Source: Iphione sp. A-MEVVRFRX5 (lineage: Eukaryota). From it: 64,000 bases of DNA. The DNA lies in NCBI GenBank assembly GCA_976226885.1, contig OZ320314.1:72478001-72542000 (forward strand), written 5' to 3'. Under the pieces are notes generated by a model that was given only the letters and a program-made list of their open reading frames with translations, ran no database searches and had not been told where the DNA came from. Both the position numbers and the translations under genes were made by a program. Of this stretch, positions 3,001-60,700 are shown one piece after another (within the stretch, counting starts at the first letter, position 1; each line of letters starts with the position of its first letter).

Positions 3001-6000
3001 TCTACAAAAAAAATAGCATGTAATTTTGTGGATGGGAAAGAGACTTAATTGTCAATTCTAAAAGTACTAAATAAATTTCCTACTTCTGGGCGCGGTATAT
3101 TACCGCCATACATATCACAAAACATGCATGTATTGACACCACGGCCAACCGGACCAACGCTAATTCGAATCCTCTGCCGTCGATATCGCATTCACAGAGA
3201 AATCACACGTGAATTCATCTCCTGTAAACATCCGCATTGAAAACGTCCGTTTTGGATCTATCGCTCAGGTGCACTGTTCAAGGGTGGCTGGTGGGAGGTG
3301 GTGGGAAGTGGGACTGGGTGGGGGGGGCCTTCAACCACCTACCTACCTGTGAGGATCAACCTGGAGTAGCGGCCTGATAACACTGTCACTGCCTGTCGAC
3401 CCATTCAGCCGGCCCCGGGCGACCATGGAGGGCCCTTGAGCGGGGTCGGCTGGGCGTCCTTCACGCAGCTATGGGGTCGGGGGCTGAGGGGGCCGCATGC
3501 AATATACGTCGATAGGGATACTAACGGTACCGACCTGTCAGATTAAGGAGACCTCTCAGTAACGAGTCAAAGGCATCGACACGCTATAATTATCCGCTAA
3601 CACATGCTCCAAGTGGCGCTGTCTGTGGCAATAGACAGCCTCTATGTCGAGGGGTTTCCATGATTAACGCCCAAAGGTACAGTTTGTCGTCTGACAAACA
3701 CTCGCGCTCTCCTCCTGACGGTGAAAGGCCATCCCCCCTTAAAAAAATGTGCTCCTCAAATAGAAGTGTGATAGGAGCGAACAAAAGGGACATACTGGAC
3801 AGCACCTAGCGTGTGCTCACATACGTGTACACATGTATATATATATATATATATCATCATCACTGTGTAAATATGGGCAGATTTTTTAAAAGTCTGCAAT
3901 GAACGAATAGTAGTAGAAATAGTACACTCATCATTTTACGCATGGGAATACACGCGAATCAAATTCGTCTCATGACTACATTATGCGTGTACATTATGTG
4001 CATTTGACGTGCCCAGGAAAGTCAAAACAACATTCACATATATAAGCCTCCTTTGTGATAACTCTGTTTATTATGTTTACCTTCAGAAGACAATGAAAGG
4101 GACTTTGCACAGAAGGTTTCACATATGGTCGGTAAGAGGATTAGACAGACCGGGGCCACGTGAGCGGTATTTGATGTGTCAATGACCAGGTACAGTATGC
4201 ATTCATGGTCGCGACAGACGTGACAGGGTTACGTAGTATCTGATGGGGGTAACATATGTGCAGTGGTCGCTGTGATAACGAAAACATCCTGCTGGTTATG
4301 GGGACGGTCACCCGCCGTCGACCAGCGAGCCAACACTCTCCAAATGCCTGCATTCTCACCTCGAGCACGACAGTCGTCCATTGAACAACGTCATCCCAAG
4401 TGGGCCCCGTCGGAACGCCGCTAAGTAGACCCATCCAGACAATGACCCCCCCCCCCCCCGCCGCCCGTCGCGCCACTCGTCCTTCCGCCTGTGTAACCCC
4501 CAAGCACCTCAGCTGCATTGTTCTAAAAGCCTAAAACAGACGCCCTAATCCGCTCTCAAACCCCATCCAACACCGTTCCATTATGGACACCGGTTCAAGC
4601 TTCGACGTATTCATTAGTTATAGGGACATGCCAGCAGTACTTTAACAGTGATTAATCTCCTGAAGACTATATGACTTCGACATCATCAAGAAAGTCATCG
4701 TGGTATATAATATAGTAAGATCAAAATAGTGGCAGGTAGATTTGTCATTCACTTTTTCATCGCGCCTCTCCTCCAACAGACGCCGCATGCAGCAACGCGG
4801 CGAGACCTCGCCATGGTTATTCTGTTTCATGTGACAATGCGCAAAATTCCAAAGACTAAATATGACTGATGTGTCATAATCGTGTGCCTTTTGCTATTGT
4901 ACCGAATGCTTGCATTGTTCAACAATGACACAACAAAGCCTGGCTCCTATTACTTTCATATCACACACGCCTTATCTCGCCGTATGTCCTATTTGTGGGG
5001 AATGCGTGTAGCACTGTTGCTAACGTCGTTATCGCAGAAAGCTGCAAACAACGGTGATGTTTATACCTACACTCTATCAACCGGTCTGATCCAGTAATGC
5101 ACGAGGCATTCCGTACTCTATGGGTATTTTAAAACAGAATGCGTGCCATGTGACGGCGGCACTTTCTCACAAGTCTTTTTTTCTTGGCCAGGGTTATTTG
5201 CTGTTTTTGCTTTACTCAAGCGAAAGAGGTGAGAGGCTAACACGACCCATATGGTGCCGTCAGCGTCGTTGACAAATTGATTGTGCAGATGATAGCTTCA
5301 TCGTTTGACCTGTGAGTCGCTCGCGGCTGACCGAGCTGCTCGGTGCCGCGGCCCCGCCGGTCGCCGGTACCACTGAGCGCGGCGACCCCCGGCCGCTGGC
5401 GACCATGGACCCCCACCACCACAACCCCTCCAGGTCCATACACATGGATTAACACCGCCTCAGCCGGCGGGCTGTCTTAATCTGGCTGCACATTTAGGAC
5501 GGATTCGCCCTGATGTAACCGCCAATTTGATGCACCAGTCCCGGCGACGCGTCTTACATGCGACCTACGTACCAACATCTTCCAATAGCTCCACCGATTT
5601 CCTCCACTAGTGTCTGTCCGCCTCGTTCTGGAACCCCACCTTGTGATCTATGTGCCACCTTTCGGCAACAAATAAACCGACATGTTGAGAGTCCCCACGG
5701 GGCCCCCTCTTCAACACGCCACAAGGTATCCAAGGCCACCGCCTGGGTCATATATGTGGCCTCTTCTAAATACCTTATGCTTGGCCCGAAGGAGTTTCCA
5801 ATACGGGTTGAAGCATCTCTTGCTGATGGAGGGCGAGGCCTGTTGGGTGCTGCCGACCTGCCGTGGAGTCGTTGGGTTGCTGAGTGGTAGATCAGTTCGT
5901 TTCGTGCAGATAGCACTTCAGAGGAGCTACAGGCGAAGAGTGTTGGTGTGAGCATGAACCCAGTCTCTTTACGCAAACCTCCAATGGCCGTCCTAGACAA

Positions 6001-44830: not shown

Positions 44831-46675
44831 TCGTCTATATAGAGCATATGTCAGTTGTATACACAAACGGGTTAGTTTGTCCGAAGGCCCGATGGTTTTC
44901 TTGAACCAAGCAAGAGTATTACAGCGCAATTTGCAGCAATACCACACAGGCAGATTGGCGTTGTTCACCTGGCTATGTAGCCTAATACCTGGAGCGCCAA
45001 GATCGCTGCAAGTACCCGGTAGGGTGGGTGTAATGATCCATTCCGCCAGTCAGGGCACACATGACGGCGGCGTCTGTACGACAGAGTGTTGCAAAAGGAG
45101 ATCTTTCGCAACCAGTTAAAATATTTATATGTTAATGTGTATATACATGTACATACACTTACATGTACATGTATGCAGCATGGTTGTGTACTTCTAGTCC
45201 ACCTTAGAAGATGCCGTGAGGGTGATAATGACGACAGCGGTATCATACCGCTTACTCCGCCACTTTTTACGCGTGAGACTCAGGTGCTACATAGAATAAT
45301 ACACTAAATATGATGTCATGTCTACTTAATTGCCATATTCATTTCCTTTGGTTTAAAGGTTCAAAATGATAATAATTTCATTAGCATTTATTCAAATACA
45401 ACGATCCAGGGCAGAAAAAGACCAGGGTCATCAAAAAGTATAAATTTTTCGTTTTTAAAGCGTGACATCCAGCACGAAATAAACGTTGCATTATGAAAAA
45501 CTTGCAATAGCTCACTTAAGTTGATATGCAAATAAGATTTATTGTACATACTCCTATGTAGTGGCCACTTAGTCTACTGGATTTGTGGTGTATAATCAGG
45601 AATCAGGTTGTGGAGGATACCAGAATTAGGCTATATTTCCATGTGCCTGTGTTTGGCCGTGTTCTTCATGTTAGTTTCATGCCTTTCCATGTATTGAGGC
45701 TAGGGGAATACATGGAAGATATGCTTCAATGTAAACTGTATTTCCACATCTGTTTACGAGCTTCAGAGACACAGATACATGCAAGCAGTCGAATTGATAA
45801 ACATAGAGCCCAAAACAACCATGGCTGTAATAACATGGTCATATGAAAGCTAGGCTGCATAGATTAAGCTACGTAGATTATGAATAGCACTTTTCATAAG
45901 ATGTCAGCAGGGTTTGCATTGAAAATTAACCCACTGATCATTGGGAAACATATTTCTGCATGAGAGCTCCAATAAAATGCTAAGTGTATAGCTATATTAA
46001 TCCAATAATAATGATCCTTAGACTACAATGGTATGATAACTGAACAAACTGATTCAGAGTTAAATTCTTTACATCATCAGGAACGCAATCTCCCTTGGAC
46101 TTCTGGCAACATCTCCTGATAGACCTGAGCAGGACAAATTTCCCACCAAATCAGAATCGCTATTTATATCAGATTTACAAATAATAGTCAATAGAAATTA
46201 AGAATTTTAAAGGAAAACAACCAGTTATTGACATAAATCTGACTGATGGTCATAAGTTCTGCTTATATTCAATAACCAGCAGCTGCATAATAAAACAATA
46301 TGTGTGTCTGCTTGGATTTTGATTCTGTTTTGGTAAGTACTAAACAATTATTTTCTAAGGGATCGTGTTTTGCTTCTATGCCAGGTTTATCCAATGGTTT
46401 CATCCAATGTCTGTTATAAACACAACTTGAATACACGTAATGAATGATGTATATATGAGCTCTGTATAAACTCTGTTCATTTATTCATCTAGGTACATGT
46501 ACATTGCTTTGATTGTAGCATCTTCTATTGGGTAAAATGTTATGATGATATATTATAAAACATGATACAAATTAGGGATATATCAATATACCATATTCCC
46601 CGATAAAACCTTGACTTTGTTGACTGATTATTTATTTAATAATTCAATATCAATAATAGAAATAGTGAGCTTTCT

Positions 46676-47220
46676 GTGGGAGAGAGATAGAGACATGCAA
46701 GGAGTGAGCTAGATAAGGAAAGGGGGAGATGGAAGGGTACTTCCCTTACTGGTTGAAAAATAGGAGGGATAGGTTGCTGAAAGGAAGAGATTGATGGGAG
46801 AGAGGGATAGGCTGAGGCAAAAATGGTTGAGGAGAGAAATGAGTACGGGGACCGAGAGAAACTTTAAGGGAGGAGGTCGGATGGAGAAGAGGAGAGATTT
46901 GAAGGATGGTGAGAGGTTAAGAGAAGGAAGGAGAGGTTGAGGAGCAGGAAGATGTTTGTCAGAGGCGGAGATTAACTAGAGAGGAAGAGGTTAAGCTAAT
47001 GAAGGGAGAAGTTCAAGGGTTGGGGGGGAGAAGAGATAATAAGAGTGAGGTACAAATTGAAGAGAGAGAAGTGGGGGATAATTGGGGGGGGGGCAATAAT
47101 AGGGCAGATATCAAAGGGAGACAGGGAGAGTGAAAGAGGGATGAGAGCTAGAAAGAGAAACTTAAGGAGAGAAGAGGGAAGAATTGGTAAGAAGGATGGA
47201 GATGTTGAGGAAAAGTAGGT
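46676..47220 (+). repeat. About 550-bp purine-rich (GA) low-complexity tract
   Basis: The plus strand is overwhelmingly G/A with very few C and no clean periodicity. Confidence 0.75.
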
Positions 47221-47759
47221 TAGTTACGACTCAATACATGACCACATTTACTTTCAGAGGTACCTTTGACCTTGTAGAATGGGGAAAAACATATGTGTAA
47301 AATGTACATTGAAGTAATATACCGTCAGAGTAAGGGTGGTTGACAACTACGATTGGGAAAAATGGGTGCAGACAGTACTAAAATATCTAAATATCAAATT
47401 AAACCATGTATTAAACGTTTCACACATATTTCCCAGAACATGCAAAAAGCCGATGGAATCCAGAATTTAAAGAGTTAGAAATCTTTAAAACTGATCCGTT
47501 ATGCACTAAATTTTGCATGGAATCTGACTGTTAGAGGATTGGACGACAACACAAGAATGTTGATCTGTATGGCTACGGTTCGTTTCATCCTGTCAGGAAC
47601 GTATTTTCTATCAATATTGAAAACTCCTTTACATCCGAAGGTCAAATCTGGTGTCACTGTATTATTTTCAAAGAGCAATATCTACTAACATGTATATTTA
47701 CACAAACACTGTATGTTGCTTTATTCAGATACAGACAATTTTATAATCGTTTTCAATTT

Positions 47760-48100
47760 CATTTCATTTCATTGTATCTTTTACCAGGAATATATTCACC
47801 TATCATATGACAGGGATCTTCCATATCCTCCTGGGGTAGCATACTACCATCTATTGTTAAGAATTGAGAGACCAGAATACCCGGGGTTGCCCCCTACTCT
47901 TATTTCGAATAGGTTTCTGGGGTCTTTTTGTGCATAGGGGACAGAATCCTATACACCCACGGCCTTTTTACGAGTTGTGGACCACTCTGGGTTGGGGCTA
48001 CAGTAAATCTGTCTGGTCTTGATCAAAAGTCCCAGGCCTAGGATTGAACCTGTGACCTCTCAGTCAGTGGACCAGTGCTCTACCACTGAGCTAACTCCCC
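47760..48100 (-). mobile_element. tRNA-derived SINE
   Basis: Minus-strand head GGGGAGTTAGCTCAGTGGTAGAGCAC...GGTTCAATCCTAGGCCTGGGAC with A box (48093-48083) and B box (48050-48041). It runs into a non-tRNA body containing (plus strand) CCCTACTCTTATTTCGAATAG, which from memory resembles conserved central domains of marine-invertebrate SINEs. ATGAA-type repeats lie at the 3' end. Confidence 0.75.
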
Positions 48101-53242: not shown

Positions 53243-53530
53243 TTAAGCCTGTTACTGAAAGATAGTTTTTAGGCCTTAAGTGGTATCCCCATGTACGTGT
53301 ACCTCTCTATATCTGCCACTCTGTATGTGTCAACCAGAAGGACCGCTCCAAACAGTTAACATACAATTATCCTCATCTAGGTGTACCTTCTGTACCCACC
53401 ACCTGATGCAAGTGGGCTGATTGTTTGTGGTCCGGTCTGCCCGGACCTGCCACCTGATGCATTCTGGGAAAAATATATGAAAGTAATGTTCTTGCTTACA
53501 TTAGTTCTTAATTTGCATCTAATTTGCACA

Positions 53531-53608
53531 AAAAGCTGCAAATTTTCCACTGATATGGCTCACTTTCAACAAAAAGCTGCAAAATTTCCACTGATATGGC
53601 CCACTTTT
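53531..53608. repeat. 41-bp tandem duplication
   Basis: AAAAGCTGCAAA.TTTCCACTGATATGGC.CACTTT at 53531 and 53572. Confidence 0.9.
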
Positions 53609-53889
53609 AATCTATTCCAGGCAGCCCCCTATCATTGTAAGACGTAATGTCACAATGCACCCCTAATGCTGTTGCTTTCCTATTGAGGGCAGTACCCCTA
53701 CTTTACTGTTGCATCATGTGAGTAAGCGAGCATCACCATTAAGGATATTTATATAAAAATGGAACTATTCTGGATATGATATCTGTAGAAATTGTGGATT
53801 AATTAATCAGGAGGAATTACTTATTTCATCTTTGTATGGATATAGGTGGAATTATTCGTATTCTTCTTACATTCTGGATTATTGCTGAG

Positions 53890-55478
53890 TGGATAGTGTA
53901 TTATGTAATGCATTTAGCTTCATGATTACTAGAATAAACTGAATAAAATTTCTGGCTCTTTCTATCAAAACAATAATACTGAAACATTTGGTCAGCCAAA
54001 TCAACTGCTCCCATGTTCTTGGAATAATCTTTTATGGCAACAGGGCAGGGGACATCACTCTTTGGTAATGTCAGGTTGTTGCATCCCACGTTTTACTGTA
54101 GACATGACCTAGTGCCATGTATTGAGGATAACAGATGTACCAGTTTTCTATCTTTCCACACACACAGTATAAGCTGGCCACACTTAGAAAAAATATAATC
54201 CCCCTACATTTGAGTGAGGCATGTTCTTTTACCATAAGAGCTCTTGGCACTCCTAATCTGTTGAGACGAAGTGTTCCACAGCAAAATATCCCAAATGCAG
54301 CTAGTTTTTCGAACATGGATACTGACATGTAGTCGTTGTCCATGTACAGCCTGTGACATTTGCCTAGTACATCAGCACCACCTAGGAGTTTCATAACATG
54401 CTCATAGAGTGACTGGCCTCCTCGATCTTCTCTACTGAAATAGGGGTCCATGTGGAGAACATATCCTGTTTGAAAGAAAATGCATTTGGGCTTAGTGTTT
54501 GGAAAAATTAGACAAATATTGAAATGGTTTCAGAACTGATTTTACAAGTATAATGTCAATGCCCTTGACTCAACCATTATGAAATTAATTTATTACCAAA
54601 ATAAAGTATATTACTCACCACTTCTGCTTTCTGCTGAGAGCCAGCTCTTGAGGCCCAATTTTGGCAGTTTCTTCGGCATGTACTGATGGAATCTACAACA
54701 CCTTTTGTGTTTTACCATCGATTCATCTATTGCCAGGTCCTTGTGGGGTCTGTACACTAAAGTTGCTATTTTGTTGAATGATTCGAAAAGCCAACTGACT
54801 TTGTTCATTGGGCCTGTAGTCTTTTTGGGGGTGCATCTGTAGACGTCCTAGGTTGTTGTGGATCATTTTCATTGATTGACGCAGCAAAATTGATATAGCT
54901 GGAAAAATGAAAGACAAATGCAAAACTAATTCCATTCGAATATAAAGGTTTAAGAATAATACATTCAGAGCAATTGCATGAATTATCATTGTAGAAACAC
55001 ACAATAAGTTCATTTTCATTGGATGATTTTTTAATTACCATAGGATCTGAATGAATTGGTCTCTTGGAATATCTTTATTAAGAGAAAGGAGTGGCAAATT
55101 CTTCTATTGTTGTCCAATATCCCTTCAAGTCTGGCTTCCTTATGATGCCCATGATGAATGTGAGGCAAACAGCGAGTTAATTTTTCAGTTGTTGTCAGTT
55201 GCCATCTGCCTTTGTGTCCGGCAGGCTATGTGGTAGGTTGATGCTGAGCATATGTGTTAGTTCTGGTGACCTACTCTGTGTTGAATTGGATAGTGAAAAA
55301 TAGTCTAAAGAAATCAGATACAGACAGACAGTCTTTTCCTTGTCAACAATTGGTTGTATTCCACAGTTTTCTTTATCAAATTTCTTTAATTCTGGTGTTT
55401 TCTCGATGTTCCCATTCTTTGTCTGAATCAGAAAACTGGTCCGCCAGATGTATACGCAGAGAAACTGCCATTGTTTTT
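53890..55478 (-). pseudogene. piggyBac-family (PGBD-like DDD) transposase pseudogene interrupted by GT-AG introns
   Basis: Colinear piggyBac motifs across frames: SDFFRLFF..TNTYA, MGIIRKPDLKGYW, IPRDQFIQIL|CYINFA, LAIDESM..HQYMPKK..KLGLKSWLSAESRS|GYVL, LYMDNDYMS..CGTLRLNR, WKDRKLVHLLSSIH, PVAIKDYSKNMGAVDLADQ..YY..RKSQK. Introns at 55038-54899 and 54618-54466. Multiple frameshifts and in-frame stops. Confidence 0.92.
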
Positions 55479-55963
55479 CTGAAGAGTTAGAAATACATTG
55501 TACTGAGCTATACATATATAAATGCGCTAATAGATTTGATTTACGCATACACAGAGGTCTTGATATCTACATGTAATTGTGCATGACATTTGAAAAGAAA
55601 TATTATCATGATGTTTTACTTTGTGCGTGAAATTATCAGGAGGTGAATAGCCCTATGTAATATAGGATGACCCTACAGAAATGTTCCGTGAATCGTCTTG
55701 ATATAAATAATTTACATACAATATCACTTATGGTAGTAGATAGTTTGTGTTCGACACTTCGTTTATAATCTTTGTTTTAAAGTCCATGTATTCTCCTTTA
55801 TTCATTCCGCTCCACCTTGAATAATGTTTTATGTGATTAACAAGATAACTTGCATAGCAAAAACTCAGAACTGAGCATTTATTTGACTGGGCCCCTAAGG
55901 GGTATTTTAGCCGTTTATTTCAAACGATTAACGAGAAATCCTCGTATTACTTCTATGGGATAC

Positions 55964-56003
55964 CCCCTCCCTACCTAGGTTTTTGGCTGGCCGTTACCAG
56001 AAA
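55964..56003 (+). repeat. Fragment of the same MITE family as 16693-17044
   Basis: CCCCTCCCTACCTAGGTTTTTGGCTGG(C/T)CGTTACCAGAAA is nearly identical to about 16985-17024. Confidence 0.75.
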
Positions 56004-56199
56004 AACAACTAGGGGGGGGGGGCTAGTGTATAAAATAAGACATTTCACGAGGTATTACAACCATTCTGTTTACCTTTTTATGCTCCGAGAAATAATAACG
56101 CAAGCTGTTCATGTTATAAAAGTCTTCTATGAAGGGATACTAATATGAGCATTCTTGTTTGTTAAAATACATTAGACATCAAAAAGGCACGCGCCTGCA

Positions 56200-56660
56200 T
56201 GCATTTAGGCCCTCTGCCAGGTATCCTCCATCCTGTGCGTCCCACAGGGAGAGGCCGTCGACTTTCCACTTACCCACATAGTTGTGCGTGACGCATGCGC
56301 ACTGCTCCATAATGCACCCGTCAGAGCGTGCGCACGCACGTGCAGGGCGGACGCCGCTGGGCGCTTGCACCTCACAGGTAAAGAGTGACCCAAGTGCAGT
56401 CAAACAATGGCCAACTTAAAAGTCGGCTGGACGCCTCAGCGTTGGCCAGCGCAAGGCAAGGGTATCCGCACGCATCATGGCACTAACGTAACAGGCACGG
56501 CCAACGCTTTGGAAGCAATTTCTCCTTCGATTGCTGATAAGTCTATTAAAAATTAAAGTCATTCTGATCGATCGGCCAATTTTCTGCGGCCTCCCGTCCG
56601 CGTGTGCTCCCTGAAGCGTTCGAGGCTTGGCGCTATTCGCTTCTTTCTAAGGAATACTCT
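56200..56660. promoter_or_regulatory. CpG-rich promoter-like segment
   Basis: High CpG density, NRF1-like GACGCATGCGCA (56290-56301), E-box CACGTG (about 56337) and a minus-strand donor TGG|GTAAGT at 56273. Confidence 0.45.
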
Positions 56661-57247
56661 CTTTACGCCTGGAAAAAAGAAACTGGCGGCTGTGAAATTT
56701 TCACTAGTGCAAATCCATACAGGGCGAGTCCTCCTAGCTTAAGAAGAGAACATATATCATTTTCTCGTATATCTTTCGTTGGAAATGAGTACCTTTTATG
56801 ATATATCGGTATTGATCGAGAGATCTGACTAAAGTAAAGAGTATAGGTGTAGGGTGAATATCAGAGATGAAACACCATACATAATACGTGATTATGAGAC
56901 CAAGAACTTAGTTCTCTATTATTCTAGATAGTCCTTGGCTCCCACGCGCTGCCGCCTGGTGACAGGAAAATACGACACTGAGTCTCTGTTTCCATAACAA
57001 CGCGTCCATAGCAACACGCGCGCGCCACGTGGTGGTGCCTCGAAGAGCCATTGGAGCGATTGGGTGGTAACGTGCAGACGATGGATTGATGGTTGTGATA
57101 ATGATGCTGCTGCTGGTGTTAGTGACTGCCGGCCCTAGTCAATAATAGATCTTGATGAATGTGATGTCCGCATTGCTCTTGTGCACATTCATGTACTACA
57201 CCTGCCTTGAAAACAAACACAAAAGGGACCGGCTTTCCTCCTCTAAA

Positions 57248-59649: not shown

Positions 59650-60700
59650 CCAAAAAGGACACATATACACCACAAATCAGAGGCTAGTGTACTCAGCGGT
59701 AGATGAGGGGAAATATATGGCAGCAGTCTTTTTCGATATGTCGAAAGAGTTCAACATGATTAATTATAAGCTCATCATTCATTTTATGAAGAAGGCTGGT
59801 ATGGAAGATGTTACACTACAACGGGTGACGTCCTACCGATGTGATTAGACACAGTATGTACAGGGTAACAACCTCAAGTCGTCCACAAAATCATGCAGTC
59901 AGTCAAGGGGTTGCACAAGGGAGCCTAATGGGCCCCTTTATATTCTCTATGGTAATCAATTCATTGCCCAAGTCACAGATAATAACAACATCTATTCTGT
60001 GCACAGACGACCTGACTGTGTACTGTGAAGCATCTAATGCATTTCCGTTAAGGTTAAAGCTTCAGCGTGGAATCAATAATGTTGTCACATGGACACAGGA
60101 TAATGGCTTGAATCTCACTGTGCACAAAACATTCTACATGTCCTTTGGTCAAGCGGTGTCCTTTGAGTTGGATTTGTCATTGATCGGCGAGAAGCTATTG
60201 AAAAAAGAACAGCTGCGGCTTCCTTGGGTACAAAATTGCCGAGAGGCTATCCTGGAAACCCATGGCGGTCCGAATGAAAGCCAGAGTGAGGCAAAGGGCA
60301 TATAGCCTAGCCAAGGTGACAAAGCTGGTTCTTTTTGAAGAGAGAGTGAAAATATTGAAGGCGTGCATCACTGGACTATGGTCTGCTATTTGTAGTAGCT
60401 AGCGGTAAAAATGAGCTTCGAATCGAGTACAACAGGGCAATAAGACTGGTAACATTGGTATCTCCCAAGGCTGTAAGGCTGGCAACCTCCCTAAGAAGGA
60501 TGGCAAATATAGCCACACTAAGTGTATGCCCTGATAAACAGCTTACCATGTTGATTTATAGACTGTAACTACTGAACAAGCACGATTTTAAGGAAAGTGC
60601 CAGCCATTTTGGCACAGGGGCACAGTAGCATGGAATGAGCTGAAAATTCCAACATAAAAGAAGCCTAGCCGTGAATACACTGAAGGGGTACATCAGTCCC
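59650..60700 (+). pseudogene. Degenerate, 5'-truncated LINE (CR1/L2-like) ORF2 reverse transcriptase
   Basis: QKGH...VDEGKYMAAVFFDMSKEF (the DxSKAFD box), QGVAQGSLMGP (GVPQGSxLGP), LCTDDLTVY (YADD box), TWTQDNGLNL, and HRGTVAWNEL near 60630. Stops and frameshifts present. Confidence 0.9.

Follow-up and report, generated by a model that had tools for sequence, protein, structure and literature searches.

A decayed piggyBac copy with two introns in Iphione sp., very probably a dead member of a mobile transposon family

Can a piggyBac transposase gene that is interrupted by spliceosomal introns belong to a mobile element, or do the introns mark it as a former host gene? Surveyed piggyBac elements are described as having a single open reading frame (ORF) (PMC5381638, PMC10813416), piggyBac transposase domains outside PGBD5 and the ciliate PiggyMacs are stated to be without introns (PMC3902484), and introns are treated as a hallmark of domesticated genes, e.g., PGBD5 and the ciliate PiggyMacs (PMC3902484, PMC5381638, PMC10813416). 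The question is raised by a locus in a 64,000-nt stretch of the genome of Iphione sp. A-MEVVRFRX5 (contig OZ320314.1, positions 72,478,001 to 72,542,000; hereinafter the window, to which positions refer unless another locus is named), where pieces of a piggyBac transposase are readable on the minus strand from 55471 to about 53908. An earlier note on this DNA left the choice between an intron-bearing piggyBac lineage and a domesticated PGBD-type gene that later died. The analysis described here indicates that the segment 53607-55480 (minus strand) is very probably an old, dead, truncated insertion from a multi-copy, two-intron family of DNA transposons of the piggyBac superfamily, an assessment that covers jointly the identity of the element, the structure of the family, the introns and the death of the window copy.

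The relationship of the locus to piggyBac is evident from matches to the profile PF13843 (DDE_Tnp_1_7): window positions 54614-54808 correspond to profile positions 106-167 and window positions 54074-54466 to profile positions 167-248 (E-values of 3e-11 and 7e-11), so that the profile is contiguous over the 153-nt segment between the two pieces. Codons for all three catalytic aspartates (the DDD triad) are still present, at 54727-25 (within IDE), 54340-38 (MDN) and 54002-00 (VDL), as had been noticed before, and they align with D268, D346 and D447 of the Trichoplusia ni (T. ni) piggyBac transposase and with piggyBat. The complete protein can be followed in an intact relative from the same genome, L002, whose three exons match PF13843 with E-values of 2e-16, 4e-16 and 5e-32 (exon 1 covers profile positions 3-86, exon 2 positions 93-165, and exon 3 positions 168-349; together 3-349). 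The IDE, (V/M)DN and VDL motifs of an intact relative correspond to D268/D346/D447 in the T. ni structure 6X67 and can likewise be aligned with the piggyBat structure 9C0F. The cysteine-rich domain profile PF13842 scores 19.6 bits on the family, against a cut-off of 24 bits, and the C-terminal tail aligns with the cysteine-rich tail of piggyBat. Thus, the element has the sequence-level features of the piggyBac superfamily, namely, the PF13843 core, the DDD triad, the TTAA target site and terminal inverted repeats (TIRs) of the CCC..GGG type.

When the 1.18-Gb assembly of the same organism (89 contigs) is searched with window positions 53800-55600, 66 matches are obtained, about 20 of which are near full length and 72-78% identical to the query. 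When these loci are compared with one another, the family members show sharp boundaries and a full length of about 2.9 kb. The 15 full-length copies, which were aligned together with the window copy using MAFFT, carry a perfect 16-bp TIR, CCCATTCCAGGCGGCC, with the reverse complement at the other end; TTAA is present on both sides in 13 of the 15, and the flanking sequences are unrelated. Near-identical copies are found at unrelated sites: the identity is 99% for L006 and L007 and, in amino acid sequence, 99.5% for L015 and L016, and the flanks differ while the boundaries are sharp. The earlier note had proposed that many TIR-flanked copies would indicate a transposon family, and this is what the genome contains. 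Judging from these ends, flanks and near-identical copies, this is a canonical, recently mobile piggyBac family. The nearest proteins in public databases are at most 55% identical and mostly represent ORF calls that include exon 3 only; no annotated spliced model of the family was recovered from public protein databases by exon queries, with a length filter that dropped full-length proteins.

The last 300 nt or so of the element are shared, with 75-87% identity, by nine further loci (L037-L045, e.g., G000:C11:71384936-71385046), which include diverged subfamilies as well as loci where transposase-coding sequence is barely recognisable or not recognisable at all. Between the clades of the family, this terminal region is 73-86% identical, compared with 46-56% for the introns. 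The conservation of the 3' end suggests that it contains cis-acting subterminal sequence, and some of these loci are possibly non-autonomous derivatives.

Both introns proposed in the earlier note are borne out by the sequence. Intron 1 (54899-55038, minus strand; 140 nt, GTAATT...CCAG, phase 2) and intron 2 (54466-54618, minus strand; 153 nt, GTGAGT...ACAG, phase 1) can be removed so as to join QIL-C-YINFA and ESRS-G-YVLH, respectively. In all 15 full-length copies, introns are located at the same two alignment columns and in the same phases, with lengths of 132-158 nt for intron 1 and 129-169 nt for intron 2, between exons of 587, 281 and 917 nt. The only departure from GT-AG ends is in L018, which has CT in place of GT at the first donor and yet is among the nine copies with an intact ORF. 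In these 9 of 15 copies, an uninterrupted ORF of 592-594 amino acids appears only once both introns are removed, and if either intron is read through, translation ends after no more than 2-3 codons. For stop counts and substitution rates, the spliced reading was joined in scripts, and database searches were run exon by exon. The two main clades of the family share 74-81% identity in the exons, where gaps are either absent or a multiple of 3 nt long, and only 46-56% in the introns, which are nearly unalignable and contain 20-63 gap columns. The ratio of nonsynonymous to synonymous substitution rates (dN/dS) of the spliced coding sequence is 0.05-0.15, with dS reaching 1.4-2.0. Thus, the exons are under strong purifying selection whereas the introns are not and, given the purifying selection and the high dS, the exon-intron structure has been kept through a long divergence of active lineages. 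As far as can be judged from these alignments, both segments are genuine spliceosomal introns of the family, and the lineage of piggyBac elements with introns that the earlier note had considered does exist, with both introns shared by more than 20 TTAA- and TIR-flanked copies, among them nine intact spliced ORFs.

The alignment of homologs, which the earlier note had named as the check on whether the two segments might be coding or unrelated insertions, shows that they are neither. The notion that they are secondary insertions, or coding sequence, private to the window copy could draw on the low a priori expectation of finding introns in a piggyBac transposase (PMC3902484, PMC5381638), and nothing else was found in its favour. 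Against it, all 15 full-length copies and the more diverged subfamilies carry the segments in the same places, their GT..AG ends are conserved, their lengths are not multiples of 3, they contain in-frame stops and diverge fast, and the ORF is restored solely by their removal. Furthermore, homologs without introns are contiguous at both sites: P0008 (550 amino acids) and P0002 (443 amino acids) read through with uninterrupted QILRYFH and ADSKNGY, and their gene lengths of 1653 and 1332 nt show that the ORFs are continuous. The probability of this alternative is close to nil, and it is considered refuted by the family-wide position of the segments, the restored ORF and the intronless homologs.

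Both intron positions are also kept in diverged subfamilies in this genome, namely, the L024 group (62-71% amino acid identity) and L045 together with L042 (about 50%). Some 100 kb upstream of the window, the exon boundaries of the locus L048:3972-5891 (G000:C2:72375971-72377890) coincide with those of the family at both introns; it shows no DNA similarity to the window family and 33-56% amino acid identity, and thus belongs to a different two-intron family. This locus is structurally intact, in contrast to the window copy, which is a truncated fossil. The agreement of the boundaries with those of L048 suggests that the introns are old. In two relatives from other public assemblies, L046 and L047, exon 3 begins at the same acceptor. 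L046, on a contig of the ENA entry ERZ25767047, is 52% identical in amino acid sequence in exon 3 and possesses a family-like end, ..CCTGGAATGGGTTAA, at 5540-5575, about 2.1 kb downstream of exon 3; exons 1 and 2 were not found within 2.5 kb upstream. Intron 2 is missing from L040 (L040:144-470, G000:C10:36473943-36474269; about 46% amino acid identity) and from P0002, which comes from another assembly, and because both read through the intron 2 site, the presence of the intron varies among related lineages. Intron 1 was also searched for a tRNA-like Pol III cassette, but ARAGORN detected no such cassette, either in the window or in the six family copies examined; the Rfam search of the window was blank as well.

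Within this framework, the layout of the window copy can be traced from its 3' end (all features on the minus strand). The TTAA target site at 53607-53610 corresponds to the family end ...GGAATGGG|TTAA and is followed by a TIR remnant at 53611-53626, with 13 of 16 positions matching the family TIR in pattern search and alignment. The earlier note had reported no flanking TIR pair; indeed there is no pair, but this 3' remnant together with the TTAA (53607-53626) had been overlooked. The 3' untranslated region (UTR) and subterminal region occupy 53627-53907 and match the terminal 300 nt or so of the family copies with 75-80% identity, so that this part of the element is kept through the TIR remnant and the TTAA; the blastn blocks in 53909-53607 align to all full-length family copies. 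The junction of an internal deletion of about 497 nt, recognised from the blastn blocks, the alignment and the list of lesions, is at 53905-53910. The exon 3 remnant (53908-54465), delineated by PF13843 and alignment to the solved structures, carries the second (54340) and third (54002) catalytic aspartates. Upstream of intron 2, exon 2 (54619-54898; 280 nt compared to 281 in the family) contains the first catalytic aspartate at 54727, and upstream of intron 1, the exon 1 remnant (55039-55471) starts from the family's own ATG (55471-55469). Both introns are orthologous to those of the family in the alignment. The stretch 55472-55480 consists of the last bases of the family 5' UTR, and both blastn and the alignment trace similarity to the family no further than about 55480, just a few bases ahead of the ATG. 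Upstream of 55410, local alignment with lenient gap penalties produced fragmentary, spurious blocks, and the blastn blocks were preferred. A 41-nt unit present twice in exact tandem (94% match) at 53528-53607 adjoins the 3' TTAA.

The reading frame of this copy is ruined, in agreement with the several frameshifts and stops seen earlier. Compared to intact L002, exon 1 contains a 24-nt in-frame insertion following ATGGCAG, a deletion of about 179 nt at approximately 55410, indels of +2 (55330-29), -2 (55167/66) and +1 (55082) nt, and in-frame TAG stops at 55273-71 and 55228-26. A 1-nt deletion affects exon 2 (54824/23), and the indels in exon 3 are of -3, -1 (54204/03), +2 (54109-08), -8 (54070/69) and -11 (at about 53948) nt. 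The deletion of about 497 nt at 53907/08 takes away the last 337 nt or so of the coding sequence, and with it the putative C-terminal cysteine-rich domain, as well as the beginning of the 3' UTR. In total, 2 stops, at least 9 frameshifting indels and 2 large deletions disrupt the ORF, and the copy is therefore predicted to make no transposase. The 5' UTR of about 350 nt and the 5' TIR are missing from the entire window: a pattern search of the whole window allowing up to 3 mismatches identifies no 5' TIR and detects only the 3' remnant, and a blastn comparison (word size 7) of family positions 1-360 with the whole window gives chance-level matches only, so that the 5' end is absent from the window rather than displaced by an insertion within it. 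With about 350 nt including the 5' TIR gone, the copy is, by all indications of its structure, incapable of mobilisation in trans as well. The mode of decay can also be read from the alignment. Of 23 CpGs conserved among the other copies, 20 are lost in the window copy, 16 of these being now TG or CA, and 8.9% of the sites that are invariant across all 15 other copies are changed. A maximum-likelihood tree places the window copy as the sister of the L002-L011 clade; its terminal branch measures 0.18 substitutions per site, compared to 0.004-0.06 for the other copies. By this pattern of substitution, the decay is neutral and methylation-driven in manner.

These observations bear directly on the second option of the earlier note, under which the locus would be a once domesticated, single-copy, intron-bearing host gene of the PGBD type, similar to PGBD5, that was later pseudogenised. 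The presence of introns within the transposase domain, as in PGBD5 (PMC3902484), the missing 5' TIR and the retention of all three catalytic aspartate codons fit such a history. However, the same exon-intron structure is found in many mobile copies flanked by TTAA and TIRs, the locus itself holds the 3' TIR remnant, the TTAA and 300 nt of the transposon 3' end, it nests within the family tree, and the decay appears neutral, with TG or CA now in place of 16 of the 23 ancestral CpGs. Domestication is accordingly rejected, as extremely improbable for a member of a mobile family that retains transposon ends and whose ORF is broken by the stops, frameshifts and large deletions listed above.

A distinct possibility, also raised in the earlier note, is that the truncated copy was captured by a host promoter and is expressed from a leader exon, with splicing from a donor at 56273 to an acceptor at 55479, yielding a chimeric transcript similar to CSB-PGBD3. 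Both motifs exist in the sequence as described, i.e., the candidate donor GG|GTAAGT (56267-56279, minus strand), which lies outside the element in a single-copy, CpG-rich segment, and the candidate acceptor CTAACTCTTCAG| (55479-55495, minus strand). Both look good, the acceptor consisting of CTAAC, a pyrimidine-rich tract and AG; the donor is inside a GC-rich segment with an observed/expected (o/e) CpG ratio of about 0.8-1.3; and the acceptor is located exactly at the end of family homology. This coincidence of the 5' breakpoint with a good-looking acceptor motif weighs against the interpretation of the locus as a plain fossil, and is treated here as coincidence. The motifs are not unusual: the minus strand of the window contains 25 GTRAGT motifs, and in the 2 kb upstream of the element about 0.8 are expected and exactly 1 is present; there are 4 instances of the more stringent GGTAAGT per 64 kb, and CTAAC..YAG is found 25 times on the same strand. 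The acceptor motif sits in foreign sequence adjoining the truncation point, and no CTAAC..CAG is present in the family copies, which have their own 5' UTR and their own ATG (55471 in the window). The 794-nt interval between donor and acceptor includes a piece of an unrelated high-copy repeat, and because the frame downstream is destroyed (2 stops, at least 9 frameshifts), no transposase-like product would be possible from such a transcript. Taken together, these counts and alignments leave the leader exon from a host-like promoter unsupported and, as an explanation of the locus, highly unlikely; a genuine donor at 56273 would more plausibly be part of a host gene that carries the fossil inside an intron.

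With regard to the surrounding DNA, only 55959-56034 is repetitive within 55481-56800 and the remainder is single copy, which neither favours nor excludes a host promoter. The repetitive piece is a fragment (50-76 nt with 83-98% identity to many loci, and 677 first-look candidates) of a high-copy repeat of about 340 nt; this repeat has short inverted ends, is located between the fossil and the GC-rich segment, and is probably a miniature inverted-repeat transposable element (MITE)-like sequence. The single-copy segment 56200-57200 has a GC content of 0.5-0.6, a CpG o/e of 0.8-1.3, and CCAAT-like and GCGCATGCG motifs, with CpG o/e dropping to about 0.3 just past 57100; it could be a host promoter, and no gene was identified in it. 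Elsewhere in the window, an ORF fragment at 59841-60302 (plus strand) matches reverse transcriptase (PF00078, E-value 6e-10) and is probably part of a decayed non-long-terminal-repeat retrotransposon, the surroundings being rich in transposable elements, and 46001-48000 is AT-rich with a strong positive GC skew (0.28 and 0.22) unlike that of the remaining window.

Among the well-characterised elements, the T. ni piggyBac (IFP2; 6X67/6X68) shares with the window family the PF13843 core, the DDD triad, TTAA, CCC...GGG TIRs, a putative cysteine-rich C-terminus and a length of about 594 amino acids. It is, however, distant in sequence (E-value of 6e-9 for exon 3), the 16-bp TIRs of the window family have another sequence, and its ORF is single and uninterrupted, compared to the two introns here. 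The closest solved relative is piggyBat from Myotis lucifugus (9C0F), with E-values of 7e-25 for exon 3 and 4e-12 for exon 1, and with an alignable cysteine-rich tail; this element is likewise mobile and has TTAA and TIRs but its ORF is intronless. Some multi-exon piggyBac elements from invertebrates are listed in Repbase. The chordate PGBD5 resembles the window family in that spliceosomal introns interrupt the transposase domain (PMC3902484). In other respects, PGBD5 is single-copy and syntenic, without TIRs, with 5-7 long introns and with most catalytic aspartates lost (PMC3902484), whereas the window family is multi-copy, flanked by TIRs and TTAA, with two short introns and an intact DDD triad. 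The CSB-PGBD3 fusion (cited in PMC5381638), in which a host exon is spliced to an acceptor just 5' of the piggyBac ORF, is the precedent for the leader exon model; PGBD3, however, is a complete element with an intact ORF conserved for about 43 million years, and in the window copy the ORF is destroyed and the 5' end is gone.

The life cycle compatible with these findings can be outlined as follows. The three-exon gene (587/281/917 nt) would encode, from a spliced mRNA only, an active DDD transposase of 592-594 amino acids with a putative C-terminal cysteine-rich domain. By analogy with T. ni piggyBac and piggyBat, this enzyme would bind the TIRs and the subterminal regions, excise the element and reinsert it at TTAA. 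The window copy very probably represents an old insertion of this kind, now devoid of its 5' end, its coding integrity and most of its ancestral CpGs. The resemblance of the sequences at 56273 and 55479 to a donor and an acceptor is most likely fortuitous, with no relation to the element. An additional role of the two introns can be imagined by analogy with the P element, i.e., a splicing gate deciding between active transposase and a truncated, possibly inhibitory protein. Retention of intron 1 leads to a stop one codon in and thus to an N-terminal fragment of about 196 amino acids without the catalytic core, and retention of intron 2 leads to a stop after two codons. Such a gate is considered unlikely; if it were real, tissue- or stage-specific splicing would set the output of transposase, and the window copy would have no part in it.

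Thus, the family is an unusual, intron-bearing variant of piggyBac, of which the window copy is an unremarkable dead representative that contributes little beyond what the family itself reveals. Given that the family is mobile and was recently active, and that the introns have been kept over dS values above 1.4 and are also present in a family with only about 44% identity, introns alone are no evidence of domestication. Genes similar to PGBD5 could have inherited their introns from a transposon ancestor.

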